Sequence record: PQ330092.1
Length of the DNA: 64,000 nt
Direction: 5' to 3' (one strand)
A program made the translations under genes and the position numbers. Of this stretch, positions 39,928-58,257 are shown in pieces. Every line of letters begins with the position of its first letter. The stretch's first letter is position 1. Below the pieces are notes generated by a model that had not been told where the DNA came from, ran no database searches, and was given only the letters and a program-made list of their open reading frames with translations.

Positions 39928-39944
39928 TAGAAGGAGTACAGCTT

Positions 39945-41720: not shown

Positions 41721-42116
41721 ATGATTACTAAATTCTACGCTACCCGTGAAGCTGCCCGTATTGTTGCACGCGAGGAAGGCGAAACATTTAAAGACATGGG
41801 CAAAGATGCACCGAAAGGTCAACGCTGGGCCGTACAGTTCAAAGAGATCTCTGATATTGTGAATTCACCGGAGCCAGTACTAACAGCAGCAGAACTAAAA
41901 CGAGCGGATTTACTGGCGTCAATACTTGATGCACAAGATGAGTTTATCGCTGATTCTGATATCAAAGTACAGACAAACCATACCGCATGGACTCACGCGG
42001 ATCACCTGGCAAACCTTAAGCGTCCAAGTGAACTGATTCGCAACCAGAAAGAGATCCGACACGACCGTAAGGGTAATCGTGTAACAGTATACAGTAAACG
42101 CCGCCAGGTTATCTAA
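41721..42116 (+). CDS. hypothetical (DTR copy 2)
   Basis: copy of 21607. Confidence 0.8.
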   Translation: MITKFYATREAARIVAREEGETFKDMGKDAPKGQRWAVQFKEISDIVNSPEPVLTAAELKRADLLASILDAQDEFIADSDIKVQTNHTAWTHADHLANLKRPSELIRNQKEIRHDRKGNRVTVYSKRRQVI

Positions 42117-42177
42117 TAACTTGCAGTACTAACAACACGGCGGGATCAGTTCCCGCCTTTTTTATAGGACAAACAAA

Positions 42178-42432
42178 ATGATTAAGGTTCAACTATATAA
42201 AGATAACATCTTACGGGTACACTATAAAGCACCTCAGAGAATCATCACAAAGGCCGTACAGCTTGCTAATGAGTTTATTAATGGTAACCTATTACCTAGG
42301 AAGTTAAGCAACGGGAAACTGCGTGTAATCGATGTAGACACTAACAACAGAATAGTAATAGAGAACACAGGAAAGATAAACCTTTATGAGCATCAACAAT
42401 ACAATAAGAAAATAAAACTAATATCACGTTGA
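42178..42432 (+). CDS. hypothetical (DTR copy 2)
   Basis: copy of 22064. Confidence 0.75.
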   Translation: MIKVQLYKDNILRVHYKAPQRIITKAVQLANEFINGNLLPRKLSNGKLRVIDVDTNNRIVIENTGKINLYEHQQYNKKIKLISR

Positions 42433-42485
42433 CAGTACTCAATTGTTTTAGTACTATGTACACATACCAACACGGGAGAAACAAA

Positions 42486-42704
42486 ATGAAATTATCTAAA
42501 ATCGAAAAGAAAACTATTGATGAAGCAGTTAAGCACGGTTATACCTTTCGTAATGATTCACATTTTACCAATTTTCAACAAGGGTATCGTACTATTAAAA
42601 AACTAATTGACAAAGGTTTATTAGTTGAAGTCAATAACGGTAACGGTATCGAGTATCAACCAACACAAGACGCATTTTATTTTAAGAAATATAATATTAT
42701 CTAA
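42486..42704 (+). CDS. hypothetical, possible wHTH (DTR copy 2)
   Basis: copy of 22372. Confidence 0.6.
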   Translation: MKLSKIEKKTIDEAVKHGYTFRNDSHFTNFQQGYRTIKKLIDKGLLVEVNNGNGIEYQPTQDAFYFKKYNII

Positions 42705-42762
42705 TTGACAGTACTCAAATGTTTTAGTACTATATGTACATACCAACACGGGGAAAAACAAA

Positions 42763-43005
42763 ATGATTACTTTAGAAAAACGTATCAAAGAAACTACATC
42801 GCTGGTGGAATTGTTAACAGTACTGAAATGTAAAACTACTCGGTTTAGTACACCGGACTTTATTAATATGGTTGATGTTAACGGTCGTTATCGTATTGCA
42901 GTAGAACAAGGCACGGCAAAAGTATTCAGTACTAAAAACACTAAGGAAGTGATTCACGCGGTTAGTGTAAAAAAAGTAGTTGCCATTGATAGTAAAGTAC
43001 TGTAA
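42763..43005 (+). CDS. hypothetical (DTR copy 2)
   Basis: copy of 22649. Confidence 0.75.
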   Translation: MITLEKRIKETTSLVELLTVLKCKTTRFSTPDFINMVDVNGRYRIAVEQGTAKVFSTKNTKEVIHAVSVKKVVAIDSKVL

Positions 43006-43036
43006 TATAGTTTCATTAACTCAAGGAGAACATGCA

Positions 43037-43621
43037 ATGCGTAATTATACTAAATTCATCCGTACACTGTCAGAAATGGAAACCAACAAAGAGATCCTTT
43101 CAGCTTGTCGGTTAGCTGGTCTGGAGATCATCGGGGCAGGTTCTTCCCGTATAGTTTTCGCTTTAAATGATCGGTTAGTGATCAAGGTCGCGAATTGTGA
43201 TGCGGGTGTAGAACAAAATGAAACAGAATGTAGGGTATGGAATTTTTTAGACTATGACCGCCCTCAGTTGAAACAGTTCTTCGCTAAAGTGCATATGCAT
43301 TTAAGCGATCCTGATAATATGTTTATTGTTATGGATCGGTTGAGTACTGCAAGTAAAGGCAGTGTAAAGCACGTTAACGCGTGCAATGAATTAAAGTACA
43401 ATATTAAACGTAATGCCATTGAACGCCAGCACCGCTTTGCTGATGCACTACAACACGTTGATGATACATTATCAACACTAACGATAAGAGATATCAGAAA
43501 ACAGAATATCGGCCAGGATCGCAACGGCCTTATTAAAGTACTTGATTACGGTTTAACCCGCAATATCTGGAATCAGTACTATAAAAAGCGTGATGTAAAA
43601 GCCGTAACTATAACACGATAA
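43037..43621 (+). CDS. protein kinase-like (DTR copy 2)
   Basis: copy of 22923. Confidence 0.8.
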   Translation: MRNYTKFIRTLSEMETNKEILSACRLAGLEIIGAGSSRIVFALNDRLVIKVANCDAGVEQNETECRVWNFLDYDRPQLKQFFAKVHMHLSDPDNMFIVMDRLSTASKGSVKHVNACNELKYNIKRNAIERQHRFADALQHVDDTLSTLTIRDIRKQNIGQDRNGLIKVLDYGLTRNIWNQYYKKRDVKAVTITR

Positions 43622-43843
43622 AAAAAGATTAAAAAAGGGATTGACTCCGGTCAGTCCCTTTGCTATTATATATTCATTGAGAGATAACTCACTGACCCAT
43701 AGGGTGCGGAAGTGTATCTATTATATAAGTATTCAGTACTGAAAACTATTTGATAAAAAGTACTTGCATTGTACTTAGAATCAAGTATAATGTTTTATAT
43801 CGAGAGGGGGAAACGGTTCTCCCTGGCAATAAGGAATAAAATC

Positions 43844-44065
43844 ATGACTACAATGACTTGCATTTACGCTTCCAATCTTCTGAATGATGCGGCCTTTAAT
43901 GTTGATTCAGAATATCAATGTTATCGGGATGAAAATAAAAAAGTTTTTGTAGTTGATAATAATGGTTTCCATATTGAATTACAATCCGGCTTCACTGGTG
44001 TTGATGGTAAATCAGTATGGGGCGTACAGGATGATAAAGGCACATATCATTTTAAACGTAATTAA
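43844..44065 (+). CDS. hypothetical (DTR copy 2)
   Basis: copy of 23730. Confidence 0.8.
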   Translation: MTTMTCIYASNLLNDAAFNVDSEYQCYRDENKKVFVVDNNGFHIELQSGFTGVDGKSVWGVQDDKGTYHFKRN

Positions 44066-44149
44066 GTATTGACAAAGTATATTAGTACTGTATAATAGTT
44101 TACATCAAGGGGAGAATAGTTCTCCCCGATACTAAAAGGAAACAAAATT

Positions 44150-44422
44150 ATGTCCAGCTACTCCGCTACTATGATCATTAAAGATATGAACGGTAATCCT
44201 ACTTCTGCTGGTGGATCATTTGGAAACATTAATTTAGATGGTCGGTTATCCATGCAATCAGCCATCGATGCAGCGAAAGAAGTTTTTAAGAATGAATGTA
44301 CTGTTAGTAAGCTGGATTATATGGGATTCGCTATCGAAAAAACTAATCGTTTTGTGAACTACAAAAAACCATTGATGATTGATACTAACCTGAAAGCTAA
44401 CGAAGTGGAGTACTTATTATGA
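44150..44422 (+). CDS. hypothetical (DTR copy 2)
   Basis: copy of 24036. Confidence 0.8.
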   Translation: MSSYSATMIIKDMNGNPTSAGGSFGNINLDGRLSMQSAIDAAKEVFKNECTVSKLDYMGFAIEKTNRFVNYKKPLMIDTNLKANEVEYLL

Positions 44423-44610
44423 CAGTTGAAGAAGTTAAAAAAGTACTGGCAGTACTACGCTATCATAATCATTGCAAGGTGAAGAATGATCCTGATTATC
44501 TCGATTCATCCCTGGAAGAGGATACACTACAAGCAATAAGCCATATGCAAAAAATGCTTAAGCGTATGACTGAAAAGAATAGACCGGACTATATCGGAAA
44601 TAAAATTTAA
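44419..44610 (+). CDS. hypothetical (DTR copy 2)
   Basis: copy of 24305. Confidence 0.75.
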   Translation: MTVEEVKKVLAVLRYHNHCKVKNDPDYLDSSLEEDTLQAISHMQKMLKRMTEKNRPDYIGNKI

Positions 44611-44696
44611 AAAGTACTTGCATTGTAGTTAGATTAACGTATAATGTTTTACATAGAGCGGGGGAATAGTTCTCCCGCCAGTCCAGGAGATACACC

Positions 44697-44960
44697 ATGA
44701 ACACTATCGAAATCACTATCAATGCACACGTATACGACAACGTAGTACTGCAAACTACTATGACCGCTAATGATACCAGTACTTTGCGGAATACTGTTAT
44801 TAGTGCCGTATGTGCTGCAATCGGTGATGTCGCCCTGGAAAATGCAAAACACGTAAACGATGGTTTCACTATGTGCAAACGTGATAACGCAAAACATATC
44901 ATCGTAGAAGGTTACGGCGGTGTAGAATATAATGTTTATATGAAAAAAGTACTTGCATAA
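44697..44960 (+). CDS. hypothetical (DTR copy 2)
   Basis: copy of 24583. Confidence 0.8.
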   Translation: MNTIEITINAHVYDNVVLQTTMTANDTSTLRNTVISAVCAAIGDVALENAKHVNDGFTMCKRDNAKHIIVEGYGGVEYNVYMKKVLA

Positions 44961-45027
44961 TAACTAAAACAAAGTATAATGTTTTGCATAGGGGGAGATA
45001 TCCTCCCCCACTAAAAGGAGTAATAAA

Positions 45028-45252
45028 ATGGCTAACTTTGATGAACTGATGCGGGAAGTAGCTAACCTGGCAGAAGAGAAGAAATCATTCGATTCTATCT
45101 ATAACACCGCTCACCGTGATTCAGTACTGGCATGTAACCAGGATCAAAAAGATGAACTAATCGCCACCTATCATGAAGCATGGAAGTACTACCGACAATG
45201 GGAGAAAGAAGAAAGAGAGTCTACCATTGACGGCCTCAATAATCTAATCTAA
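45028..45252 (+). CDS. hypothetical (DTR copy 2)
   Basis: copy of 24914. Confidence 0.8.
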   Translation: MANFDELMREVANLAEEKKSFDSIYNTAHRDSVLACNQDQKDELIATYHEAWKYYRQWEKEERESTIDGLNNLI

Positions 45253-45328
45253 AAGTTTTATTTCAGTACTATTGACATAGCTTGATAGTACTGATGTAAT
45301 AACTTTACTAACTACAAGGGGAAACATA

Positions 45329-45586
45329 ATGGAACAGTTCACACAATATCGGGTAAATCCTCAAGCGATGGCCTACGTAGAAGACCATAAAACGTTACCA
45401 GTACTAACACCAATTAAAGGCCATATCTATCGTGCAATGTCGTGGTGTACGGCCCAGGATGGCTATAAAACCGTAGCCGTTGGTATGTATTGCGGTAATG
45501 GTGAATGGTTTGATCCAAATAATCCGGTAGCCATTGACAGTACTGAAAAAATGAAATGGGCCGACTACATCGAAGATATTTCATAA
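45329..45586 (+). CDS. hypothetical (DTR copy 2)
   Basis: copy of 25215. Confidence 0.8.
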   Translation: MEQFTQYRVNPQAMAYVEDHKTLPVLTPIKGHIYRAMSWCTAQDGYKTVAVGMYCGNGEWFDPNNPVAIDSTEKMKWADYIEDIS

Positions 45587-45675
45587 AACTATTTGACAGT
45601 ACTAACCAGTAATGTATAATGTTTTACATAGAGCGGGGGAATAGTTCTCCCGCCAATAGTTTGGAGTAAAATATT

Positions 45676-45876
45676 ATGTCTATCGCTCTCGCCCTGGTTG
45701 AAGTACTGAAAGAAGCTAAAGCCAACCTTATCGATGTACAGATTAAGGAATTGCAAAACGGCTTAATCGGCTGTACTTGTACCGCTGGCGGTGCGGCAGA
45801 CTATCGAGAACACGAATCACTCGAATCACTGGTTCGGTATCTTACCATGATCGTTGATGATTGGAGAATCATCTAA
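45676..45876 (+). CDS. hypothetical (DTR copy 2)
   Basis: copy of 25562. Confidence 0.8.
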   Translation: MSIALALVEVLKEAKANLIDVQIKELQNGLIGCTCTAGGAADYREHESLESLVRYLTMIVDDWRII

Positions 45877-46121
45877 CAAAAAAGAATAAAAAAAGGGATT
45901 GACTCCGGTCAGTCCCTTTGCTATTATATACGCATAGACAAAAACTAGCCCACAGGGTGCATAGGTGTATCTAAAATATATAGTTAATAACGGTGAGTAA
46001 CTATCTGCTGGTGGAACTAAAACTATTAATAAAAAAGTATTGACAAAGTATATCAGTACTGCGATAATGTATCTCGTAGGGCGGCAATGGTGCGACGGCC
46101 CACAAAGTTAGGAGCTTCAAA

Positions 46122-47414: not shown

Positions 47415-47442
47415 TTGATTTTTTATACGAATCGTATATTAT
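47415..47442 (+). promoter_or_regulatory. probable promoter of the LGTxxQE array with a palindrome in the spacer
   Basis: TTGATT-16-TATTAT; TATACG-aat-CGTATA overlaps spacer/-10. Confidence 0.5.
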
Positions 47443-47472
47443 AGGATTGATATTATTTTTAATGGAGTCCCT

Positions 47473-47670
47473 ATGCGTATTTTAACTAAAGAACAGCACC
47501 ACGAAAGACTTATCAATAACATGGCTATGATAATGTATAAGTCCCATGACCGTGGTATTGCCTATAAGCGTGAATTAATTATGGCACTATTCATTGGAAC
47601 TAACTTTCAGGAAAGGTATGTCAACGATTGGATTTGGTATTTAATTGAAGATATAACGAGTAAACTATGA
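47473..47670 (+). CDS. LGTxxQE-family paralogue 1
   Basis: FIGTNFQE; SD GGAG. Confidence 0.85.
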   Translation: MRILTKEQHHERLINNMAMIMYKSHDRGIAYKRELIMALFIGTNFQERYVNDWIWYLIEDITSKL

Positions 47671-47867
47671 AAATGCGTATTTTAAATAAAGAAGAATATC
47701 AATCACTGTTACGTAAAAACTTCACAAAGATTTATAATACAGACACACACGTAGAACGAATGGAGTTATACCTTTTGATTACTTTGGGAACTAACTATCA
47801 GGAAAGATGGGTGATTCAATATATGGATACATTGAAAAATAAAATATTGTCCACGAGGAAACAATGA
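47667..47867 (+). CDS. LGTxxQE-family paralogue 2
   Basis: TLGTNYQE. Confidence 0.85.
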   Translation: MKMRILNKEEYQSLLRKNFTKIYNTDTHVERMELYLLITLGTNYQERWVIQYMDTLKNKILSTRKQ

Positions 47868-48073
47868 AAACTATAACACGAACCCAATCATACGGTCTTA
47901 TCTTGAAATACATGGACTTAATGGTGGATATCAGCAAAGACCTTCCTAAAACTGAAATTCAAGTTGCAAGAGCAGAGATCCGTATGTTGGCTGTACTGAA
48001 CACAAACCATCAGGAAGAGTATGTTGAAGAATGGATTCGATTTTTAATAGAAGATATAAAGAGTAAATTATGA
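47864..48073 (+). CDS. LGTxxQE-family paralogue 3
   Basis: VLNTNHQE. Confidence 0.85.
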   Translation: MKTITRTQSYGLILKYMDLMVDISKDLPKTEIQVARAEIRMLAVLNTNHQEEYVEEWIRFLIEDIKSKL

Positions 48074-48285
48074 TTATTATAGAAAACTCATATCAATATA
48101 CTGAACGCATCGCTGCCAGACAACTTGAAATCCTCATAATATACGAAGAGACTTCTGATTTAAACTTAGCCGAGGTATTGGAAAATGATATACTATTGGG
48201 TGCATTCTTAGGAACAGACTATCAGAAGTATTATGAGGAAAAGTATTTGTCATCTCTTGAGAAATATATCAGGAGCAAATTATGA
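48070..48285 (+). CDS. LGTxxQE-family paralogue 4
   Basis: FLGTDYQK. Confidence 0.85.
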   Translation: MIIIENSYQYTERIAARQLEILIIYEETSDLNLAEVLENDILLGAFLGTDYQKYYEEKYLSSLEKYIRSKL

Positions 48286-48494
48286 TTTTTTTAACACCAG
48301 AAGAATATAAGAAACGTTTCAATTCCGCACAGGGTGAAATCTTACTTATATACCTTTCAAATGCAGACCTTAACTTATCAAGGGTATTAGAAAAAGATTT
48401 ACTTATGGGTGCATTCCTTGATACAGACTTTCAGGTGTATTATGTAGGGGAATACTTAATTGCACTTCAGAATTATATCAGGAGTAAACTATGA
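48282..48494 (+). CDS. LGTxxQE-family paralogue 5
   Basis: FLDTDFQV; close to paralogue 4. Confidence 0.85.
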   Translation: MIFLTPEEYKKRFNSAQGEILLIYLSNADLNLSRVLEKDLLMGAFLDTDFQVYYVGEYLIALQNYIRSKL

Positions 48495-48718
48495 AACATT
48501 TAAGTAATATTGAGAAGATGAGAATTATCATTGATGCATTAAACAAATACGATACCCTTTTACAAATAAAAGGTTTAACTCGATTGGAACACAAGATAAA
48601 CACCACCGATGTACGCATGTTGGCTGTACTGGGGACAAACTATCAGGAAGGTTATGTTCATGAGCACATAGTTGCACTCACTAATTACATAATGGACAAA
48701 TGTAATGAACATCATTAA
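48491..48718 (+). CDS. LGTxxQE-family paralogue 6
   Basis: VLGTNYQE. Confidence 0.85.
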   Translation: MKHLSNIEKMRIIIDALNKYDTLLQIKGLTRLEHKINTTDVRMLAVLGTNYQEGYVHEHIVALTNYIMDKCNEHH

Positions 48719-48929
48719 TAACTTTGAATACGAGGCCCGTGCTAAGAGTGCCAGAAAAAAAGAGAACACCATTTACTTCACTATGATGTACTTACAATGG
48801 ACTGAAATTGAAGAAAAGGTTGCTGAAGTATGGATGTTGGAATTCATGGGGACGCAGTATCAGAATAGGTTTGCGGGTGAGTATATCAATGTTCTTATGA
48901 AACAAATAGAAAGAAAGGAAAAGAACTAA
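48705..48929 (+). CDS. LGTxxQE-family paralogue 7
   Basis: FMGTQYQN. Confidence 0.85.
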   Translation: MNIINNFEYEARAKSARKKENTIYFTMMYLQWTEIEEKVAEVWMLEFMGTQYQNRFAGEYINVLMKQIERKEKN

Positions 48930-49087
48930 TGGTTTTCATTAACATATCTGACCAACTCGATACTAAACTAGAAGTCGAGCAGAGTGAGGGATGGATGCTG
49001 TACTTTCTTGGAACTTCTCATCAAAATTTTTATATCCATGAACACATAGTTGCACTCACAAATCTAATAAGGGATAAATGTAAATGA
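48929..49087 (+). CDS. LGTxxQE-family paralogue 8, shortened 52 aa (below cutoff)
   Basis: Hand translation ...FLGTSHQNFYIHEHIVALTNLIRDKCK*. Confidence 0.7.
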   Translation: MVFINISDQLDTKLEVEQSEGWMLYFLGTSHQNFYIHEHIVALTNLIRDKCK

Positions 49088-49341
49088 AACACTTAACACA
49101 AGATGAATTTGAAACTATAATTCGTAAACTAACCCCCATCACAAGGATAGTCTACGGTGACCCCAGCCTTACATGGAACCAAATGCGAGCTAAAGTTAAT
49201 GAGCTATGGTTGCTGTACTTTATGGGGACTCAATATCAAGATAAGTTTTGCACAGAATATATCGAACAATTAACGAATGTTATACAGGATAAACTAGATG
49301 ATTATTTGCTCACAAAACATGAAGACTTTATCAGGAGTTGA
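49084..49341 (+). CDS. LGTxxQE-family paralogue 9
   Basis: FMGTQYQD. Confidence 0.85.
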   Translation: MKHLTQDEFETIIRKLTPITRIVYGDPSLTWNQMRAKVNELWLLYFMGTQYQDKFCTEYIEQLTNVIQDKLDDYLLTKHEDFIRS

Positions 49342-49570
49342 GTATCAAACTGCCCTATTCTCTTTAATCCATGCCCTTAGAAAAAACAATGCCTTATATG
49401 GTGCACCTGAAGTGGATGTTATCAACGGTGAACTTTATCTTATGAAATTCATTGGAACAAACTATCAAGATCTGTTCATTCAACGATACTTATCAGCATT
49501 AAGAAACCAAATCCAATATAAAACCCAGAGAGCCAAAAAAGAATGGAATAAACAATGCGACACAGACTAA
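49319..49570 (+). CDS. LGTxxQE-family paralogue 10
   Basis: MKTLSGVEY start; FIGTNYQD. Confidence 0.8.
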   Translation: MKTLSGVEYQTALFSLIHALRKNNALYGAPEVDVINGELYLMKFIGTNYQDLFIQRYLSALRNQIQYKTQRAKKEWNKQCDTD

Positions 49571-49806
49571 ATCACAAAATGTATTGTAAACTATTGCAGA
49601 CACTGGCACAGAAACACTATGACACGGTATCTGAAATATTACCCTATGATATCATGCGTTTACTTCACTGTGAGGCCGAGATGCTTGTACTGATGACAGG
49701 CACTGATAAAAAAGCAATTGCCAAATCAATAGATATGTTCATCGAAGCACAATGTCAACACATTAGAACCGAGATATGGAGACGAGAGAATGATAACACT
49801 AAATGA
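49555..49806 (+). CDS. LGTxxQE-family paralogue 11 (divergent)
   Basis: EAEMLVLMTGTDKK. Confidence 0.7.
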   Translation: MRHRLNHKMYCKLLQTLAQKHYDTVSEILPYDIMRLLHCEAEMLVLMTGTDKKAIAKSIDMFIEAQCQHIRTEIWRRENDNTK

Positions 49807-50005
49807 GTTTCAGTATCATTGGAGGTTACAAGCTATAAGAAGGAAAGTTGTTAGTATTTCTTTAGACAAGTCTATTGCACAAGAGGACAAATGTGTTATA
49901 ATAGCTGAAATGAAGTTGGGTGCTTTCGTAGGGACAAACTATCAAAACATCTACACTGACGTATTGTTAAGTGCCTTACGTAACAAGGTGATATCAAAAG
50001 AATGA
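49790..50005 (+). CDS. LGTxxQE-family paralogue 12
   Basis: FVGTNYQN. Confidence 0.85.
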   Translation: MITLNEFQYHWRLQAIRRKVVSISLDKSIAQEDKCVIIAEMKLGAFVGTNYQNIYTDVLLSALRNKVISKE

Positions 50006-50220
50006 GAAATTTACAAGGCTTTGAATACATCAGACTCCTGAAAACATGCACCAGCAGAAGGAAAATCTTATCAAGCGATAAGAGCATCCAAGCTAACCTT
50101 AAGCACGCACTAGTAACTGAACTCTATGTAGGTGCACTCTTAGGCACAAACTATCAACAAATGTATGTAGATCTATGGATTGACGCTCTACAGAAAGAGG
50201 TTAAAAGTAAATGCAAATGA
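50002..50220 (+). CDS. LGTxxQE-family paralogue 13
   Basis: LLGTNYQQ. Confidence 0.85.
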   Translation: MRNLQGFEYIRLLKTCTSRRKILSSDKSIQANLKHALVTELYVGALLGTNYQQMYVDLWIDALQKEVKSKCK

Positions 50221-50429
50221 TTAATTTAAGTAAAGACGAATTTTATGTTATACTGGCGAAAACTTATCCAGCACGTAAGGCCGTTTATGATAGTCACATT
50301 ATTGAACCCTCAAAGAAGTTGATTTTAGTAAATGAGATAAAGATGCTTTCAGTCTTAGGAACAAACTATCAAGAGAATGCTGTACTGATGTTAATTGATG
50401 CCCTCCAGAGAGAGGTTAAACGTAAATGA
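50211..50429 (+). CDS. LGTxxQE-family paralogue 14
   Basis: VLGTNYQE. Confidence 0.85.
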   Translation: MQMINLSKDEFYVILAKTYPARKAVYDSHIIEPSKKLILVNEIKMLSVLGTNYQENAVLMLIDALQREVKRK

Positions 50430-50656
50430 AAATGATTAATTTAACTTACCATGAATATCAAAAACGTTTAAATGCATCCAGAGATATAAGGATTCAAATA
50501 TTCAATAACAAAAAATTGAAACCTGATACCAGAAGAATCAAAATCATAGAAGCCGTGTTGTGTAACTTCCTAGGGACTAACTATCAGGAAGGTAAGGTAG
50601 AAAACTATCTTATAGAACTCATGAATAGTATTGAAAATAAATGTAAGGGTAATTAA
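50426..50656 (+). CDS. LGTxxQE-family paralogue 15
   Basis: FLGTNYQE. Confidence 0.85.
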   Translation: MKMINLTYHEYQKRLNASRDIRIQIFNNKKLKPDTRRIKIIEAVLCNFLGTNYQEGKVENYLIELMNSIENKCKGN

Positions 50657-50657
50657 C

Positions 50658-50897
50658 ATGAAAATGATTAAATTATCTCAAGCAAAATATAAAGAACGCC
50701 TGGTGAAAATTGCACCTGGACTTAATGAAATCCATCACGGAGAAGTCATTAAACACGGAAATAAGATGATTATGAAACTTGAGTTAAAGGTGGGTGCATT
50801 CATAGGAACAAACTATCAGGAGTATTATGTAGATGAATACATAATCGCACTTAAGAGATATATTGGAAGAAAACTATATCTACAAACTAAAGAATAG
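50658..50897 (+). CDS. LGTxxQE-family paralogue 16
   Basis: MKMIKLSQ start; FIGTNYQE. Confidence 0.85.
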   Translation: MKMIKLSQAKYKERLVKIAPGLNEIHHGEVIKHGNKMIMKLELKVGAFIGTNYQEYYVDEYIIALKRYIGRKLYLQTKE

Positions 50898-50926
50898 TAT
50901 TGAAAATAAATGTAAGGGTAATTAAC

Positions 50927-51190
50927 ATGCAAATGATCAATTTAAGTAAAGATGAATATACCGAGCGTATGACAAAAATTACGCACAAACGTAATACAAT
51001 CTATCACAACCCAGAAATTCAACACAGTAAGAAAATGATTATGATGCGTGAGTTAAAGATGGGTGTATTCTTAGGAACAAACTATCAAGATACAGAAGTA
51101 AATCGCTTAATCGCGGAGTTACTACTGGAAATCAGAGGTAAGCTGTACTTTCATCAAATGACCCAACCACTGAGGTGTACTAAGAAATGA
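50927..51190 (+). CDS. LGTxxQE-family paralogue 17
   Basis: MQMINLSK start; FLGTNYQD. Confidence 0.85.
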   Translation: MQMINLSKDEYTERMTKITHKRNTIYHNPEIQHSKKMIMMRELKMGVFLGTNYQDTEVNRLIAELLLEIRGKLYFHQMTQPLRCTKK

Positions 51191-51402
51191 TCAACATCAC
51201 ATTGCAAGAAAGATTCATCCGAATCAACTATGCAATTACCAAATTAGATGCTACTATAGGATTCCAAAGTCTACCATACAAAACCAGATTGTTATTAGAG
51301 TGTGAAGCTAAGTTGGGTGTACTATTAGGGACGCAACACCAACAACGATATGTGGAAATCTGGATTGATCTTTTAACCCAGGATGTACATGAGAGAATGT
51401 AA
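51187..51402 (+). CDS. LGTxxQE-family paralogue 18
   Basis: LLGTQHQQ. Confidence 0.85.
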   Translation: MINITLQERFIRINYAITKLDATIGFQSLPYKTRLLLECEAKLGVLLGTQHQQRYVEIWIDLLTQDVHERM

Positions 51403-51657
51403 ATGCAAAATGAAATGATATACTTAACCTATAATGAATACGTCGAGAGATTAGTTCGTGCCAAGAGATATACCAATAAACGTCCAATTGACCTAAACCA
51501 AACCCCTGCCGAAAGGAGTGCAGAAGTTTTATTCCAATCACTACCATACCTTCTTGGAACTGATAGACAAGAGGAATATGTTGCACGTATGATTAGATAT
51601 CTTAAAATCACTATTAAGGAAAAAGTAAATGCAAATGAAATACTTAACAGACGATGA
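51403..51657 (+). CDS. LGTxxQE-family paralogue 19
   Basis: AERSAEVL...LLGTDRQE. Confidence 0.85.
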   Translation: MQNEMIYLTYNEYVERLVRAKRYTNKRPIDLNQTPAERSAEVLFQSLPYLLGTDRQEEYVARMIRYLKITIKEKVNANEILNRR

Positions 51658-51880
51658 GTTAAAAGAACGACTAATTAAATCCAGAAAACTTACAAATCAA
51701 CTTCCAAACGACACAAACAAGTCACATGCCGAAAGGAGTGCAGAAGTTTTATACATTCAACTCATGTACTTTCTTGGCACTGACAGACAAGAGTATTACA
51801 TTGAAAGTATGCTTCGATATCTTAAATTCTCTATAAAGGAAAAGATACATGCTCAAGAATTTAAAAATCCTAACAGTTAA
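51629..51880 (+). CDS. LGTxxQE-family paralogue 20
   Basis: AERSAEVL...FLGTDRQE; recent duplicate of 19. Confidence 0.85.
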   Translation: MQMKYLTDDELKERLIKSRKLTNQLPNDTNKSHAERSAEVLYIQLMYFLGTDRQEYYIESMLRYLKFSIKEKIHAQEFKNPNS

Positions 51881-52091
51881 TGAATATCATACGATTGTAA
51901 TGAAAACTAATAGTGCAATTTCTAAAAAATCAAACCCCAAGTACATACTGGAACACACATTCGAAGAACGTCAATTAGCTTTAGTTGAAGCAAAACTTCT
52001 TGCACTCCTAGGAACAAACTATCAGGAAGAATACATCAGAAAACTAATATACCTTTTAACTAAACATATAAGAAAAAGAAAAAATGCATGA
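51849..52091 (+). CDS. LGTxxQE-family paralogue 21
   Basis: LLGTNYQE. Confidence 0.85.
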   Translation: MLKNLKILTVNEYHTIVMKTNSAISKKSNPKYILEHTFEERQLALVEAKLLALLGTNYQEEYIRKLIYLLTKHIRKRKNA

Positions 52092-52318
52092 AACACTTGA
52101 CAGATGATGAACATGGACTTATAGTAATGGATGTAATCAACATCGAATACAAAAAGTTGATACGCTACCGTTGTTATGAAGATAAGCAACTCGTTCTAGC
52201 AGAACAGAAGTTGTTTCGACTCTTAAACACAAACTTCCAAGCACAATACGAAGAATCGTATATGTACCTTTTGGCGAGGAAAGCAAAAAGAGATTATGAA
52301 AATTTTAAGCAAAGGTGA
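52088..52318 (+). CDS. LGTxxQE-family paralogue 22
   Basis: LLNTNFQA. Confidence 0.85.
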   Translation: MKHLTDDEHGLIVMDVINIEYKKLIRYRCYEDKQLVLAEQKLFRLLNTNFQAQYEESYMYLLARKAKRDYENFKQR

Positions 52319-52517
52319 TTCAGTAATATTACTTATAGAGAGTTCAAGTAAATTCTTAAACATAACACTGTCTGATATAGATGAAGATGACAAAGAAGTA
52401 CTGAGAGCAGATTTAAGAGTACTGTTACATATCGGAACAAACCTACAAGAAGAATATGTAGAGTGCTACATTAATGAACTTAAAGAATCAGTACTGAGAA
52501 AATGCAAATGCAAATGA
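52296..52517 (+). CDS. LGTxxQE-family paralogue 23
   Basis: HIGTNLQE. Confidence 0.85.
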   Translation: MKILSKGDSVILLIESSSKFLNITLSDIDEDDKEVLRADLRVLLHIGTNLQEEYVECYINELKESVLRKCKCK

Positions 52518-52741
52518 AAATCATTTCACCCACAGAATACAACCAACTATTAAGTAGTTTAATTCTAAAGCTGTTTATAACAAAAAGCATGAAATTACCA
52601 GATGATGAAATAAGTATTCTAGTAAGTGAAATCTATGTTCAAGCTACACTAGGGACTAACTATCAAGAATGCAATATTAATGATTACATCAATGAACTAA
52701 AAAGGTTTATCCAATGCAAATGCGAATCATTACCGAAGTAG
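52502..52741 (+). CDS. LGTxxQE-family paralogue 24
   Basis: EIYVQATLGTNYQE. Confidence 0.85.
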   Translation: MQMQMKIISPTEYNQLLSSLILKLFITKSMKLPDDEISILVSEIYVQATLGTNYQECNINDYINELKRFIQCKCESLPK

Positions 52742-52956
52742 AATACCTAACAATCATAAATGGACTGTTTTCGAAGTTATTTGCCATTAACACATCAAAA
52801 CTTCCAGATTCTGATAAAATTATTAAGTTAAATGAAATCTACGTTCAAGCTACTCTAGGAACAAACTATCAAGAAGCCAATGTGTATAATTACATTAATA
52901 CACTCAAAAGGGTAATACAATTAAAATGCACAGACAGCACACACACAAACCCCTAG
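52714..52956 (+). CDS. LGTxxQE-family paralogue 25
   Basis: EIYVQATLGTNYQE; recent duplicate of 24. Confidence 0.85.
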   Translation: MQMRIITEVEYLTIINGLFSKLFAINTSKLPDSDKIIKLNEIYVQATLGTNYQEANVYNYINTLKRVIQLKCTDSTHTNP

Positions 52957-53156
52957 GAACAGCAGAATACATTGAACTAATGGCTGCAAACTTCTCATCC
53001 TTTAAGAAACTGATGCAAGAATCAAAGAATGATTTAGAATATCACATCAAAAGTTCAGATTTAAGATTGCTACTCACTCTAGGAACAGATTCCCAAGAGC
53101 GATTTGTCAATGAGCATATTAGAGCACTTTTAAATGGCATCAGGAATAAACTATGA
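52926..53156 (+). CDS. LGTxxQE-family paralogue 26
   Basis: TLGTDSQE; start uncertain. Confidence 0.8.
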   Translation: MHRQHTHKPLGTAEYIELMAANFSSFKKLMQESKNDLEYHIKSSDLRLLLTLGTDSQERFVNEHIRALLNGIRNKL

Positions 53157-53368
53157 AGGAAATATCAAATCAAGAGTACTTGGCACTATTCAGGAAGAAT
53201 AATCACAAATATATGGCACTTGATTCAAGAACTGATATAAGTGAACTTGAAAAAAATCTTTTGCGTTCAGAGATGATAGTACTGACACTCTTAGGAACAC
53301 AGCATCAAGAGAGAACTGTTAATTCACACATAGGGATTCTTATGCAGATAGTTCAGGAAAAGATATGA
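53153..53368 (+). CDS. LGTxxQE-family paralogue 27
   Basis: LLGTQHQE. Confidence 0.85.
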   Translation: MKEISNQEYLALFRKNNHKYMALDSRTDISELEKNLLRSEMIVLTLLGTQHQERTVNSHIGILMQIVQEKI

Positions 53369-53586
53369 GAATCATAACACAACAAGATATTCTTAAGTTC
53401 ACAAGGGTTCATGCATCTGAATTTGATGCTATATTATCAAAAAGTTACAACAACCCTTATACACAAGATGTACATTACAGTGAATTATGGATGTATATAC
53501 TTTTAGGTACAAATAAGCAAGAGCAAGCCGTACAGAAGTATTTGACAGCTTTACGTGATGCTACTGCTAATGGAGTACATGTTTAA
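53365..53586 (+). CDS. LGTxxQE-family paralogue 28
   Basis: LLGTNKQE. Confidence 0.85.
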   Translation: MRIITQQDILKFTRVHASEFDAILSKSYNNPYTQDVHYSELWMYILLGTNKQEQAVQKYLTALRDATANGVHV

Positions 53587-53587
53587 T

Positions 53588-53830
53588 ATGAAAGTACTGA
53601 CAGAACTAGAAATGTATCATAGATTTAATAAGTACTATCATTTACTTAAGCCTATACAGAGGATTAAATGTCCATTTGAAGAGAAACAGGTTTTAATCTA
53701 TGAGCACAAGTTCTTTGTATCATTAGGTACAGATCAACAAGAGTACTATTTGACGTTGTACTTGATTACATTAATAGATTTAATTCACTATAAAACCAAA
53801 CAAGCTAATAAAGAGAAATATGAAAACTAA
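53588..53830 (+). CDS. LGTxxQE-family paralogue 29
   Basis: MKVLTELEMY start (uncertain); SLGTDQQE. Confidence 0.8.
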   Translation: MKVLTELEMYHRFNKYYHLLKPIQRIKCPFEEKQVLIYEHKFFVSLGTDQQEYYLTLYLITLIDLIHYKTKQANKEKYEN

Positions 53831-54164
53831 TATACAACTCAAGGTATATAAATCATTTGAACATACATATATCAAAAGTAGTCTATGTAGAGATGTAATG
53901 GATTACAAGGGTAAGCCATTCACAATTACCTATGATTCTTATGTTAGTGATTTATATATATCATTTGTTAATTACGAAAATAAAATATACAAGCACGTTG
54001 ATATTAAAGATTTAAGTACTTTATCACCAGAGGAATACTTTCAGGAATCATTAGTATGGGATTTAGAGTTTCCTATGCCATTAGTACATAAGATGATAGT
54101 ACTAATGAAAGAATCTAAACAGGAGCCTAATGGTGATTATGAAGAACACACAGTTGAGTATTAA
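53820..54164 (+). CDS. EExFQxSLV-motif protein
   Basis: LSTLSPEEYFQESLVWD. Confidence 0.85.
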   Translation: MKTNIQLKVYKSFEHTYIKSSLCRDVMDYKGKPFTITYDSYVSDLYISFVNYENKIYKHVDIKDLSTLSPEEYFQESLVWDLEFPMPLVHKMIVLMKESKQEPNGDYEEHTVEY

Positions 54165-54534
54165 AAGTACTGATAATATTAAGAGTTATACAAGCTCAAG
54201 TACTGTGACAATCGAAGTGAATTCTCTTAATGCTGGTAATACAGTAGATAAGTTCTTTATTGCTCAAGGGTACAGGAAAGATATTCATCAATATTGTTCA
54301 GTATATGGGGAGTACAATAGTACTGAAGATATAATTTATTGGTCAACACATCAAGATTATATAACTAAAATTGGCGTTCCAGATGTTAGTACTTTATCTG
54401 AAGAAGAATACTTTCAGTACAGCTTAGTACATGATGTACCTATACCTTTAGGGTTAATCAAGGGTATACAGGAAGAGGTTCATAAGCTTAAATCCATGAG
54501 TAAAGGTACTTTCATTAGAACAGTGCAGTACTAG
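54139..54534 (+). CDS. EExFQxSLV-motif protein
   Basis: VSTLSEEEYFQYSLVHD; SD GGTG. Confidence 0.85.
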   Translation: MKNTQLSIKSTDNIKSYTSSSTVTIEVNSLNAGNTVDKFFIAQGYRKDIHQYCSVYGEYNSTEDIIYWSTHQDYITKIGVPDVSTLSEEEYFQYSLVHDVPIPLGLIKGIQEEVHKLKSMSKGTFIRTVQY

Positions 54535-54535
54535 C

Positions 54536-54564
54536 TTGACAGAACTTTTCATTACTGATATAGT
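54536..54564 (+). promoter_or_regulatory. sigma70-type promoter
   Basis: TTGACA-17-TATAGT. Confidence 0.7.
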
Positions 54565-54593
54565 ACACTAACGTTAATCATAGGGTAAAAATT

Positions 54594-54839
54594 ATGTTAA
54601 ATTTTTTAAATTTTCTTATCGTCTTGTGTATTGTTCTTGGGATTGCACCATTTGTATTGTATTTCATGGATTCAGATGAAATGCAAAAGATGAATTGCAC
54701 AAGGACAGGACAGAGTAGAGTAGAGACGATTCTTATGCCTGTTACGGTTATTGTTAATAATATGCCCATTACCAACATGGTCCCTACCCTAACGACAACG
54801 TACCAGTACTCTTGTGCTGACGGAGAGAGGTGGAGATGA
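54594..54839 (+). CDS. membrane-anchored small protein
   Basis: N-terminal TM FLIVLCIVLGIAPFVLYF; two Cys in the soluble part. Confidence 0.75.
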   Translation: MLNFLNFLIVLCIVLGIAPFVLYFMDSDEMQKMNCTRTGQSRVETILMPVTVIVNNMPITNMVPTLTTTYQYSCADGERWR

Positions 54840-55147
54840 AATTTAATATAGCAAAAACATCGAGTATATGTATTTTTGGTTATGCTGATGAGTTAGGTGA
54901 TATTGACATTCTTTTGTACAAAAAGGATGGTGTTATGCATTTCAAGTACCAGGATGAAGAGGCAGACAATTATCTTTTACCTAATTTAGTACAAATGCAG
55001 GAAGAGGAATTATTCCAGTACAGCTTAGTATACGACATTGATATTTGCACGATGCCAGTACTAATTAGTATTCAAAAAGTGATGCTCGATATGTATGATA
55101 AGCTAATACAAGGTATGTCAGGGAGGATCATTGAAATTGACATATAA
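54836..55147 (+). CDS. EExFQxSLV-motif protein
   Basis: MQEEELFQYSLVYD. Confidence 0.85.
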   Translation: MKFNIAKTSSICIFGYADELGDIDILLYKKDGVMHFKYQDEEADNYLLPNLVQMQEEELFQYSLVYDIDICTMPVLISIQKVMLDMYDKLIQGMSGRIIEIDI

Positions 55148-55343
55148 GAATATACCTAATGCATATGAAATGAAGTACAGGGAGTTTATTAAAAATGTAC
55201 ACACCGATCCTTTTAATATCAAAATATCAGAGTTTGATGTATTATTTTATCTAGGGTCAATAGCACAGGATCAATGCGTTGATAAGCTCATATGGTCCTT
55301 GAAAATGGAGATACAATGCAGACCCAAATATATAAAAAGGTAG
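55131..55343 (+). CDS. outlying LGTxxQE-like paralogue
   Basis: SEFDVLFYLGSIAQD; TTG start. Confidence 0.7.
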   Translation: MKLTYKNIPNAYEMKYREFIKNVHTDPFNIKISEFDVLFYLGSIAQDQCVDKLIWSLKMEIQCRPKYIKR

Positions 55344-55579
55344 ATTCTTTATTGTACGCTTCAAAGTACAGGGATTTTTGTTTACGAGGGGGAGAGGAAG
55401 ATTTCTCTCTGAGATTATCTGAATTTAATATGTTATTTTATCTTGGTACAAAAGATCAAGAAGATACAGTACAGAAATTTATCAAGCACCTTGAACAAAA
55501 AATTCATATGCAAATTTTTATGCTTAAGGTACATAATGAGATAAACAAATATGAACCCAACAATAGTACAGGATCTTAA
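55316..55579 (+). CDS. outlying LGTxxQE-like paralogue
   Basis: SEFNMLFYLGTKDQE. Confidence 0.75.
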   Translation: MQTQIYKKVDSLLYASKYRDFCLRGGEEDFSLRLSEFNMLFYLGTKDQEDTVQKFIKHLEQKIHMQIFMLKVHNEINKYEPNNSTGS

Positions 55580-56086: not shown

Positions 56087-56289
56087 TGCAAAAGATTAAT
56101 ACGATAACATTAAATGCATTACAGGATTCATTATTAGATAGTATTAAGATGTATTACAATATACATTTGAAGGGTGGTATTGATAATTACGATTATTATT
56201 TGAGTTTAATTACATTTGAGCACCTTTCAGTACAGGACAGGATTTTACATCCTACAAATCCTAGGTATCCATCGATAGGTAAATTATGA
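56086..56289 (+). CDS. hypothetical
   Basis: ORF track. Confidence 0.7.
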   Translation: MQKINTITLNALQDSLLDSIKMYYNIHLKGGIDNYDYYLSLITFEHLSVQDRILHPTNPRYPSIGKL

Positions 56290-56840
56290 ATGAGATAGAG
56301 TTATTAGCACACAAGATAAGTACAATAATGCTTATCCTCAATAACAACCATCCTATATCGCATATAGATGGAATCCTGAGTCAGAGGACAGGTGGTAGTT
56401 TATATTTGTCCATAAACGCAGATATCGCAAGGAAATACATTGATATTGACATTGATGTTGAAATCGAATATGATACAACGGGGATTGTTGATGTAGGTGC
56501 ATTAATCAGTTCAAATCCAGTATCAGCATCCCCATTGACCAAAGGTGTTAGTACAGGATTCGAAGGGTATTTGTGGTACAATACCAATGATGATTATTTT
56601 ATATATCAGCATTCCAATACAAATTATGATGAAGACAAATTTCAGTTCATAGACCCTTATGATGAAGCTGGCGTATTCCAACAATCATTAATCACAAAAC
56701 CGCATGAGATGATGTATCTAATGTTATTCAGTACAATGCATTTGAATTCATTAATTAAAGGTTTAAAATTTTATATTCAATTAAATTTAGTCCATGTAGT
56801 TTATGATTTATTAATGCAAGGATACAGTTATGAAGTATAA
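56286..56840 (+). CDS. FQxSL-motif protein; paralogue of 56912
   Basis: MNEIELLAHKIST...EGYLW...VFQQSLI...LMQGYSYEV. Confidence 0.85.
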   Translation: MNEIELLAHKISTIMLILNNNHPISHIDGILSQRTGGSLYLSINADIARKYIDIDIDVEIEYDTTGIVDVGALISSNPVSASPLTKGVSTGFEGYLWYNTNDDYFIYQHSNTNYDEDKFQFIDPYDEAGVFQQSLITKPHEMMYLMLFSTMHLNSLIKGLKFYIQLNLVHVVYDLLMQGYSYEV

Positions 56841-56890
56841 AATGATGTATACCCAAAGATATGATTTATGTTGAATTAGAAGATGATGCA
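56830..56890 (+). pseudogene. frameshifted, truncated copy of the 5' end of 57408
   Basis: Near-identical to 57408-57466 but ACCCAAAGAT vs ACCCCAGAT (+1) gives an early stop. Confidence 0.7.
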
Positions 56891-56911
56891 TCCATCAATA
56901 GGTAATAATAT

Positions 56912-57418
56912 ATGAATGAGATAGAATTATTAGCACACAAGATTAGTACAGTAATGCTTATGCTCAAGAATAATCATTCTATGCATAAGTACATTTATAT
57001 AGGTGATTTACGCATAGAAGATAGATATGATAAATTATCGTTTTTGTTTAAAGATGAAAGTAATGCAAAAGTTTGTTTTGCAGCATTTGCCCAAGGCAAT
57101 CCAGAACAAGCATCTCCTGTTATATACGAAAATAGTGAAGGGTATTTGTGGGTCAACACAAACGATTATTTCTTTTATGATTTGAAACAAAATGATGAAG
57201 TAGAAGCACGAATTGATTTAATTGATATTAGTTCAGATTGTAGTTCTGAATTATTTCAGAAATCGTTATTATACAGTCCTCGTCAAATACATTATCTAAA
57301 GTTATTCAGTTCATTGTACGCGAATCCTTTAATTAAGGGTTTTAAATTTTATATCAAAATTCCGTACCTTTCAAACGTTTATGATATTTTGATGCAAGGA
57401 TATAGTTATGAAGTATAA
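56912..57418 (+). CDS. FQxSL-motif protein; paralogue of 56286
   Basis: SSELFQKSLLYS. Confidence 0.85.
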   Translation: MNEIELLAHKISTVMLMLKNNHSMHKYIYIGDLRIEDRYDKLSFLFKDESNAKVCFAAFAQGNPEQASPVIYENSEGYLWVNTNDYFFYDLKQNDEVEARIDLIDISSDCSSELFQKSLLYSPRQIHYLKLFSSLYANPLIKGFKFYIKIPYLSNVYDILMQGYSYEV

Positions 57419-57719
57419 AATGATGTATACCCCAGATATGATTTATGTTGAATTAGAAGATGATGACGATGGGTGGAATTTGATTTATTCAAGAAGTTCA
57501 GGTTGGTACATGGCACATTTAAATGATTCGATAGTTACAGATTATTTTGTAGATTTCAATACATTATCCGATGAAGAATTGTTCCAACAGCAATTAGTGA
57601 TTGACACGGGTGGTTATGATGTCTTATTATTAAAAAAGATACAGAAAGCTGTTATTGATTTTAAGCCCATGATATGGCAAAGGAAATATTATGACCTCGA
57701 AGTACCGTACCAGCAATGA
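57408..57719 (+). CDS. EExFQ-motif protein
   Basis: FNTLSDEELFQQQLVID. Confidence 0.85.
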   Translation: MKYKMMYTPDMIYVELEDDDDGWNLIYSRSSGWYMAHLNDSIVTDYFVDFNTLSDEELFQQQLVIDTGGYDVLLLKKIQKAVIDFKPMIWQRKYYDLEVPYQQ

Positions 57720-58257
57720 TATTCAGTACACCTACGCTAATGCAATCCTTATGGGACAAAAGTTAGCTTGTATTGTTGCAGCCTTATATAATGCACAGAA
57801 AGATTACAAGCGTCACATCCACAAATGTATTGGTATTATTCCATCGAAGTACAATACATATATTACGTGCACGAGTCATTTTGATAAACGATTCAATACA
57901 CCTGATACACCAAATGCCCGTAGTGTTATTGGTCTTTTGGATTTTGCACCTGGTGCTGTTATTGGAAAGAATGATTTAGAGTACGCATGGTATAATAAAA
58001 ATGCCCCGTTAGTAATGGTAAAATATGATACAGAAACGAACAAAGCAATAGAGTACAATACATATAAATCAGAGGAAGAATTTTTCCAAGGTTCAATGCT
58101 TGTACCAGTGCGTTTGTTATTTTATAATGTCATAATGAGTACAGTACACAATAGTCCATTACACAAGAATCACAAAATTAATTTCAATTTTTGTGCTTAT
58201 GCGATTGATGGTGTGTATGAGTGTTTAATGGAGGTATTGAGTTATGAAGCTGAATAA
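57691..58257 (+). CDS. EExFQ-motif protein
   Basis: YKSEEEFFQGSMLV. Confidence 0.8.
   Translation: MTSKYRTSNDIQYTYANAILMGQKLACIVAALYNAQKDYKRHIHKCIGIIPSKYNTYITCTSHFDKRFNTPDTPNARSVIGLLDFAPGAVIGKNDLEYAWYNKNAPLVMVKYDTETNKAIEYNTYKSEEEFFQGSMLVPVRLLFYNVIMSTVHNSPLHKNHKINFNFCAYAIDGVYECLMEVLSYEAE

Follow-up and report, generated by a model that had tools for sequence, protein, structure and literature searches.

Small scaffold proteins encoded in many diverged copies near the genome termini are found in poxviruses (the Bcl-2-like proteins) and in African swine fever virus (MGF110/360), where they are non-structural and act on different host factors. The accordion at the vaccinia K3L gene, in which the copy number shifts by recombination between tandem copies, was reportedly described by Elde et al. 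in 2012. In the host-takeover module in the terminal redundancy of Bacillus phage SPO1 and in the hyperplastic regions of T4-type phages, small genes are densely packed, host-type promoters are strong and plasticity is high. In Firmicutes, tandem arrays of esaG, which encodes type VII secretion immunity proteins, consist of non-identical small paralogues, and inter-copy homologous recombination alters their number (PMC9484751). A lineage-specific expansion of a zinc ribbon to ~35 copies is described for Bacillus phage G (PMC7824862), in a passage that gives no arrangement of the copies. Here we describe an array of 31 small paralogous genes (g01-g31) at positions 47473-55579 of the window, a 64,000-nucleotide (nt) stretch of Escherichia phage JP4 (PQ330092.1, 370,741 bp). 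JP4 is an Asteriusvirus, a Rak2-like jumbo myovirus infecting E. coli. The array, named the LGT array after the LGTxxQ motif of its products, belongs in kind with the lineage-specific expansions of large viruses and the recombining immunity arrays.

The LGT array resembles the esaG arrays in being a recombining string of small paralogues with a presumed match to polymorphic partners. The esaG arrays, however, are found in bacteria, their products differ in fold and family, and their toxin partner, EsaD, is known, whereas the LGT array resides in a virulent phage and no toxin gene partner was seen in or beside it. With the poxvirus and African swine fever virus families it shares diverged copies near a terminus in numbers that differ between isolates, although folds and hosts are unrelated and the function that has been demonstrated for those families is proposed for the array. 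In contrast to the K3L accordion, which is recent and reversible and consists of near-identical copies, the array copies are at most 52% identical and occupy slots that are orthologous across the genus. JP4 and phage G are both jumbo phages in which a single small protein is encoded in tens of copies, but that of JP4 is a helical bundle and not a zinc ribbon. The small genes of unknown function at or beside a terminal repeat recall the SPO1 and T4-type blocks; those consist of unrelated genes with their own promoters, whereas the LGT array is a promoter-less block of a single family.

Organisation of the array and distribution of the family

An initial annotation made from the sequence alone had proposed 29 consecutive and two outlying genes, and the open reading frame (ORF) listing and translation agree with it: the contiguous block of + strand genes extends over 6,358 bp (47473-53830) and is followed by two outliers (55170-55343 and 55316-55579). 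The products of the block have 52-87 amino acids (aa), and the upper size of 90 aa given previously holds only when the alternative start at 49298 is used. The single truncated gene that had been noted is g08 (52 aa). Twelve of the 28 junctions are ATGA-type 4-nt overlaps and 26 abut or overlap, the two gaps being 1 and 29 nt, which accords with the reported ATGA-type junctions over 6.4 kb. A Shine-Dalgarno match of at least 4 nt precedes 14 of the 29 starts, compared with 8.7% of random array positions, and the starts without such a match presumably depend on re-initiation. There is no intergenic room for a promoter or terminator, and a terminator scan of the array detected sites no more commonly than in shuffled sequence. 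The array is thus probably read as one tightly packed, translationally coupled unit. In the stretch that separates the terminal repeat from the array, the sole promoter candidate is a weak sigma-70-like site just upstream of g01. The two best sigma-70-like sites in the interior of the array (49093-49121 in g09 and 52097-52125 in g22) arise where TTG ACA or TTA ACA encodes the conserved Leu-Thr near the N-terminus and are probably coding by-products. As judged from their sequences the array proteins are soluble, and neither a signal peptide nor a membrane segment was seen.

The array starts 98 bp after the inner boundary of the left direct terminal repeat. The records of phages E9.1 and fEgEco12 begin with the homologue of position 27262 and end with that of 47375, and the segment is present at both ends. 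For fEgEco12, a direct terminal repeat of 20,993 bp has been established by PhageTerm and restriction mapping (PMC13070987), and the terminal repeat of Sharanji is 20,668 bp (PMC11895373). Because the E9.1 and fEgEco12 records end at the repeat boundaries and the fEgEco12 repeat has been mapped, the JP4 record, which is permuted, joins both terminal repeats. The genome has its physical ends at 27261|27262, and beyond the left repeat the unique DNA begins with the array.

All 31 products share MKxL(S/T)xxEY and (L/I/M)GTxxQ(E/D). Their MAFFT alignment gave the consensus MxxLxxxEY...E......LGTNxQExYV..I..L...I..K with a mean column identity of 28%, in which the G, T, Q and one Leu are at least 90% conserved, so that the shared protein pattern described before was reproduced. 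Thirty of the 31 members matched phrog_4148 (best E 9e-27; e.g., residues 3-74 on positions 1-72 of the 74-position profile, E 1.7e-24) and 15 matched phrog_28039, both listed as of unknown function, while NCBIfam contained no match for the family. The earlier statement that no family is recognised holds for families of known function. An exhaustive HMMER profile search of 1.84 billion representative proteins detected just 94 relatives, all with the LGTxxQ motif and all short (52-122 aa) except for one fusion of 269 aa. The relatives that were traced come from 350-kb contigs of the Asteriusvirus type, or from a metagenomic contig in which at least 15 genes form a similar array.

The region 47473-55579 is 100% identical to JP4 and 86-97% identical to the same region of ~35 other Asteriusvirus jumbo phages of Escherichia and Salmonella, among them PBECO4, 121Q, G17 and phAPEC6. 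Distribution was assessed by profile searches of whole phage records. Ten Asteriusvirus phages contained 21-33 copies, and RaK2 and K64-1 (Alcyoneusvirus) contained 12-13 copies in small clusters of 1-3, with no one-to-one orthology of array members between the genera. No family member was detected in five other Rak2-like phages, namely GAP32 and CBB (Mimasvirus), Salmonella phage Munch, Klebsiella phage fENko-Kae01 and Yersinia phage fHe-Yen9-04 (Eneladusvirus). The JP4 record has 33 matches, the two additional ones being located at record positions 183914-184199, ~4.3 kb past the end of the window (E 9e-13 and 6e-6).

The array genes are labelled as hypothetical proteins and nothing more in all records, and a literature search found no paper describing the family or its array architecture, fold, distribution or evolution. 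RaK2 was reported to have ~10% paralogues among its proteins (PMC3622015). It appears that an unnamed PHROG cluster and hypothetical annotations were all that was known beforehand, and that the size, architecture, fold, distribution and mode of evolution of the family were undescribed. Jumbo phages are mostly genetic dark matter, and here ~2% of a 350-kb genome is devoted to one uncharacterised protein family.

Two RaK2 members (L022 1170-1535 and 4892-5161) and one metagenomic member (L021 6052-6369) are fusions with a C-terminal extension of ~55 aa, and the extensions of the RaK2 and metagenomic members look alike by eye, without alignment. The 269-aa Asteriusvirus-type fusion (P0084) has a C-terminal domain of 200 aa. 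It was considered as a Rosetta-stone clue to function and rejected, as this domain is an orphan without relatives.

Predicted fold and evolution of the paralogues

AlphaFold2 was run on the alignment of the 31 products with g15 (76 aa) as the first sequence and predicted a small helical bundle with a mean predicted local distance difference test score (pLDDT) of 96.3 and a predicted template modelling score (pTM) of 0.81. Helices were assigned to residues 8-17, 19-26, 33-46 and 54-73. The only beta-bridge residues in the model were I4 and T51 (DSSP), which indicates that the N-terminal MKxL strand pairs with the LGT turn connecting helix 3 to helix 4. We infer from the model that the LGTxxQ turn acts as a clasp of the fold, and the invariance of the motif would most simply be structural. 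The constraint on individual columns agrees with this modelled clasp. When pN/pS was pooled over orthologue pairs of six of eight phages by a crude counting method, the slowest columns were M1, L4, F46, T49, Q52, L63 and K70 (pN/pS 0.04-0.11; profile-column numbering), and the fastest were 17-19, 25, 54, 57, 58 and 61 (0.62-0.92), which lie on helices 1-2 and, helically spaced, on helix 4. The model and the column rates together support the earlier description of diversified helical proteins with one invariant turn, that is, a conserved scaffold with variable surfaces. The members differ widely in isoelectric point (pI 4.4-9.9) and net charge (-6 to +8), and so wide a pI range speaks against one charged ligand shared by all.

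The g15 model, a confident helical bundle, matched no known fold in the AlphaFold/Foldseek check that had been recommended: Foldseek found no solved structure in the PDB at E ≤0.001 (best E 2.6). A wide structural search with VIA-align gave a best Z of 7.0, which is within helical-bundle noise. In the ESM Atlas the template modelling (TM) score was only ~0.5, and a feature search yielded no usable match. BFVD contained nothing beyond the family itself, and the family profile searched against PDB sequences gave only chance matches with E above 0.6. Known anti-defence proteins (anti-CRISPR, anti-restriction, anti-CBASS and anti-Thoeris sponges, and others) showed neither homology nor fold match in the Foldseek, BFVD and NCBIfam searches. 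Prediction of a g15 homodimer gave an ipSAE of 0.29, which is below the mark and counts neither way.

A possible relationship to the CpxP/Spy LTXXQ family (PF07813) was considered and rejected. Its members are also small helical proteins with an L-T-x-x-Q-like motif at the start of a helix, and two PF07813 clusters of the ESM Atlas were among the weak matches (TM 0.48-0.54). However, the array motif has an extra Gly and the array proteins lack a signal peptide; there was no PDB sequence match at E ≤10, and the family was not in the top 50 structural matches. We therefore treat the resemblance as a coincidence.

Identity among the paralogues was 27% on average and 52% at maximum. The nearest paralogue was the direct neighbour for 13 of the 29 members, compared with a permuted mean of 2.0, and 13 was reached in none of 10,000 permutations. 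Thus neighbours are often closest relatives, as had been proposed; the pairs 4/5, 19/20 and 24/25 hold and 16/17 is to be added (48-52% identity). The slots are collinear and orthologous (60-100% identity) across ten phages, and single cassettes have been lost, gained or swapped for divergent alleles; such replacement occurs even between otherwise near-identical phages. The copy number in the main locus, which was to be compared across isolates, ranged from 21 to 31 in the ten phages: 31 in JP4, PBECO4 and G17, 30 in phAPEC6, fEgEco12 and ph0011, 28 in E9.1, 25 in 121Q, 23 in A4 and 21 in Turkey5. Between JP4 and Turkey5 the array members were only 36% identical (median), whereas nine genes just to the left were 92-99% identical at the protein level. 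All reading frames are intact in the ten phages. The pooled Nei-Gojobori ratio of non-synonymous to synonymous substitution rates (dN/dS) was 0.34-0.46 for orthologue pairs and 0.22-0.43 for flanking small genes. These values clearly point to purifying selection on every slot, at ratios slightly above those of the flanking genes.

One crossover could be resolved at the base level. E9.1, phAPEC6, fEgEco12 and ph0011 have a single gene in place of g06-g07-g08 of JP4. The 3' end of this E9.1-type gene matches g06 first and g08 afterwards, in both cases at the 3' end. JP4 and E9.1 differ by a 379-bp indel flanked by repeats of ~50 nt at 48660-48709 (3' end of g06) and 49039-49088 (3' end of g08) with an identical core of ~20 nt, and g08 is a chimera with a g07/g09-like 5' part and a g06-like 3' part. 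From this comparison the ~50-nt repeat is identified as the crossover zone of an in-register recombination between copies. It falls within the 3' part of the helix 4 coding sequence that the two copies share, 3' of the DNA encoding the LGT motif.

This position differs from that expected previously, when a DNA motif at the LGT turn was suggested as recombination homology. The motif does recur: the word GGRACWAACTATCARGA is present in 10 exact copies and in 15 at ≤2 mismatches, where 0.08 would be expected by chance. As a recombination breakpoint it found no clear support: by our own reading 4 of ~15 junction ends were near the motif, which is not clearly above expectation, and the ends of blastn high-scoring segment pairs are too imprecise to place breakpoints. 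The exact motif was found in 44 stretches of IMG/VR; besides 121Q and RaK2 these were single matches near the chance rate by our own estimate. The codons of the motif are biased. For its Asn, AAC prevails over AAT by 16:1, compared with 43:75 elsewhere in the array genes (p=5e-6; 47596-52874), and for its Tyr, TAT prevails over TAC by 15:0, compared with 76:51 elsewhere (p=1e-3). Asn-Tyr pairs elsewhere in the window showed no comparable bias. The excess of codon identity peaks at columns 4 and 49-51, with a smaller peak at 41-45. Short-tract gene conversion and a nucleotide-level signal are both possible causes of this bias.

These comparisons indicate that the array evolves by birth and death in a hypervariable region, by neither a recent accordion nor concerted evolution. 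Of the gene accordion that had been proposed, recombination between copies and a variable copy number (21-31) stand. Recent amplification is rejected because the paralogues are old, their order is collinear across the genus and the slots are under purifying selection. The array thus offers a clean natural case of birth-and-death evolution with in-register recombination in a phage multigene family. In one public run, which is probably of mixed-phage DNA, contigs join g03, g04 and g05 otherwise at 48059-48479 (a 252-nt skip and a 421-nt back-step); they may represent structural variants or errors of assembly at paralogues.

Possible functions of the array products

The interpretation that we favour, with somewhat less than even confidence, is that the array encodes a library of non-structural binding proteins that share a scaffold but differ in target, each recognising another protein of the host or of a competitor in the service of host takeover or counter-defence. 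It is drawn in part by analogy, as arrays of paralogues that vary the surfaces of a common scaffold serve elsewhere as multi-target inhibitors or immunity sets, for example the esaG arrays (PMC9484751) and the poxvirus Bcl-2-like proteins. Also counted in its favour are the confident model, the variable surfaces and charges, the purifying selection, the recombination between copies, the divergence of the array relative to its left neighbours and its location right after a terminal repeat dense in near-consensus sigma-70 promoters. The ~31 genes in the window (33 in the genome) would be read as one unit starting 98 bp beyond the left repeat. Each encodes a soluble protein of ~70-85 aa, predicted to fold as a helical bundle that is held together by the MKxL strand and the LGTxxQ turn, and the exposed faces of helices 1-2 and 4, plus the net charge, vary by copy. 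Old tandem duplications built the family, which now undergoes birth and death with every slot kept under purifying selection; cassettes are gained, lost and replaced through in-register recombination between copies and exchange between phages. The products would be made in infection. The virion proteome of phAPEC6, which comprises 62 proteins down to 4.66 kDa (Table 1 of PMC7247149), contains no array product (gp462c-gp489c), and the products are therefore read as non-structural. Each may have its own target in the host or in a competitor, such as a polymorphic defence or toxin protein, and the array would act as a set of inhibitors or decoys. The decoy or inhibitor library suggested in the initial annotation would be compatible with all that was observed.

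Several observations weigh against the library. The per-site dN/dS check recommended in the initial annotation revealed no pooled site above 1 (maximum column pN/pS 0.92), and so does not demonstrate that an arms race is under way within slots. The fold searches (PDB, wide structural search, ESM Atlas and BFVD) yielded no hint of a binding function, and the conservation of T and Q could reflect a shared functional site instead of a structural clasp. No canonical early promoter precedes the array, just a 9/12 match. The public RNA runs are Logan contigs only, mostly from wastewater and possibly DNA, and prove no transcription.

The evidence bears differently on the other accounts. Tandem esaG arrays match the LGT array in architecture and mode of evolution (PMC9484751), and cassette replacement between otherwise near-identical phages with purifying selection on each copy would also be expected of an immunity or antitoxin set in which each copy neutralises one variant of a polymorphic toxin of competing phages, prophages or plasmids and not a chromosomal defence system. 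However, no toxin gene partner was seen in or beside the array, the PHROG matches of the neighbours are all of unknown function, and standing immunity to secreted toxins would be of no obvious use to a virulent jumbo phage; we consider such a set rather unlikely. A combinatorial version of the library, in which the surfaces of a rigid mini-scaffold are re-assorted by in-register recombination among cassettes or co-infecting phages to form a standing inhibitor library against polymorphic host defence, and the fixed codons (ACA AAC TAT) are kept as an anchor for recombination or gene conversion, is unlikely in our estimation. Binding to nucleic acids is suggested by a pI above 8 in 17 of the 31 members and by K/R-rich C-terminal tails in many of them, and the ~35 zinc-ribbon copies of phage G have been proposed as transcription factors (PMC7824862). 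About a third of the members, however, are acidic or neutral (pI 4.4-6.8), and no helix-turn-helix or other DNA-binding fold was matched in the structure searches. Moreover, the DNA for the basic tail also holds the ribosome-binding region of the following gene, which may account for some of the tail's conservation. It is thus quite unlikely that the products are small modulators of transcription or translation.

Mixed polymer subunits had also been suggested. Equal-sized products of a coupled unit would come in similar amounts and the scaffold core is conserved, as might be expected of homo- or hetero-oligomers or of subunits of an intracellular structure formed in infection. This suggestion found no support: the copies number 21-31, cassettes are swapped or lost among viable isolates, charges differ widely, none of the 62 phAPEC6 virion proteins is an array product (PMC7247149), and the model is a self-contained bundle (pTM 0.81). 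Self-assembly is accordingly judged improbable. Neutral or selfish duplicated DNA tolerated by jumbo phages might explain the truncated copy, the hypervariable region and the lack of a known function, but it is hard to reconcile with frames that are intact in ten phages, dN/dS well below 1, site constraint that follows the fold and maintenance of the family in two genera, and we regard it as highly improbable. The probability left over belongs to something not considered here.

If the members of the library are differently aimed inhibitors, they would provide >90 natural variants of one tiny scaffold with a confident model, as probes for new targets in bacterial defence or host takeover. The array could then explain differences in host range among Asteriusvirus phages under development against pathogenic E. 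coli and Salmonella.

Terminal repeat and neighbouring genes

The features of the array and its surroundings are listed in the table.

Table. Members of the LGT array and adjacent features in the window; presence or absence of orthologues per slot is from the comparison across ten phages
Feature	Position	Strand	Size	Motif	Remarks
Left direct terminal repeat	27262-47375	+	20,114 bp		Exact tandem copy of 7148-27261
Weak sigma-70-like site	47415-47442	+		TTGATT-16-TATTAT (9/12)	Consensus match alone; 30 nt upstream of g01
Shine-Dalgarno	47461-47464	+		GGAG	Upstream of g01
g01	47473-47670	+	65 aa	IGTNFQE	
g02	47667-47867	+	66 aa	LGTNYQE	
g03	47864-48073	+	69 aa	LNTNHQE	
g04	48070-48285	+	71 aa	LGTDYQK	Most acidic (pI 4.4); nearest paralogue g05 (51%)
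g05	48282-48494	+	70 aa	LDTDFQV	
g06	48491-48718	+	75 aa	LGTNYQE	3' end recurs at end of g08
g07	48705-48929	+	74 aa	MGTQYQN	Missing in E9.1, phAPEC6, fEgEco12, ph0011
g08	48929-49087	+	52 aa	LGTSHQN	Truncated chimera without helices 1-2
g09	49084-49341	+	85 aa	MGTQYQD	
g10	49319-49570	+	83 aa	IGTNYQD	90 aa from alternative ATG at 49298
g11	49555-49806	+	83 aa	MTGTDKK	Most divergent motif
g12	49790-50005	+	71 aa	VGTNYQN	
g13	50002-50220	+	72 aa	LGTNYQQ	
g14	50211-50429	+	72 aa	LGTNYQE	
g15	50426-50656	+	76 aa	LGTNYQE	Modelled member (pLDDT 96.3)
g16	50658-50897	+	79 aa	IGTNYQE	Youngest duplicate pair with g17 (226 nt, 76% identity)
g17	50927-51190	+	87 aa	LGTNYQD	
g18	51187-51402	+	71 aa	LGTQHQQ	
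g19	51403-51657	+	84 aa	LGTDRQE	Nearest paralogue g20 (52%)
g20	51629-51880	+	83 aa	LGTDRQE	
g21	51849-52091	+	80 aa	LGTNYQE	Most basic (net +8)
g22	52088-52318	+	76 aa	LNTNFQA	
g23	52296-52517	+	73 aa	IGTNLQE	
g24	52508-52741	+	77 aa	LGTNYQE	Nearest paralogue g25 (52%); no counterpart in E9.1, G17, 121Q
g25	52714-52956	+	80 aa	LGTNYQE	
g26	52926-53156	+	76 aa	LGTDSQE	
g27	53153-53368	+	71 aa	LGTQHQE	
g28	53365-53586	+	73 aa	LGTNKQE	
g29	53579-53830	+	83 aa	LGTDQQE	Final gene of contiguous block
Array interruption, three second-family genes	53820-54164, 54130-54534, 54836-55147	+		(E/L)(Y/L)FQxSL	
Hydrophobic ORF	54594-54839	+	81 aa		Within array interruption
g30	55170-55343	+	57 aa	LGSIAQD	Outlier, N-terminally short
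g31	55316-55579	+	87 aa	LGTKDQE	Outlier

On its + strand the terminal repeat has 19 near-consensus sigma-70 promoters, or 0.94 per kb; none is present in the right unique end. The promoters in 27627-46068 (~19, strong and of host type) share the form TTGACA, ~11 nt, AGTACTG, TATAAT (e.g., 34361-34427, 37201-37267, 41626-41692 and 45892-45927). In several of them the -35 box is located in the loop or stem of a hairpin with a DNA folding energy of -8 to -10 kcal/mol, and these hairpin-borne -35 boxes resemble the promoter-early stem-loops of T4-type phages. Two families of repeated intergenic elements were also observed in the terminal repeat: D1 of 119 nt (8765-8883 and nine more copies; five per repeat) and D2 of 139 nt (16217-16355; two per repeat). 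Both probably contain promoters.

The right unique end encodes RCC1-like 'regulator of chromosome condensation' repeat proteins at 842-2008 (- strand; PHROG 4219, E 3e-115) and 1-897 (- strand). Proteins of phAPEC6 annotated as 'DNA condensation protein' belong to its virion proteome (PMC7247149).

A second family of paralogues, comprising at least 5-8 genes (103-188 aa), interrupts and follows the LGT array at 53820-55147, 56286-58257 and 63202-63935. Two Tyr and F-Q-x-S-L are invariant in five aligned members (53820-55147 and 56286-57418). The family corresponds to PHROGs 13866 and 19795, both of unknown function. Its AlphaFold model, a beta-meander with two helices, had a pLDDT of just 65 and was therefore not used for a fold search. 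A run of 55 N is present at 63037-63091 of the window.

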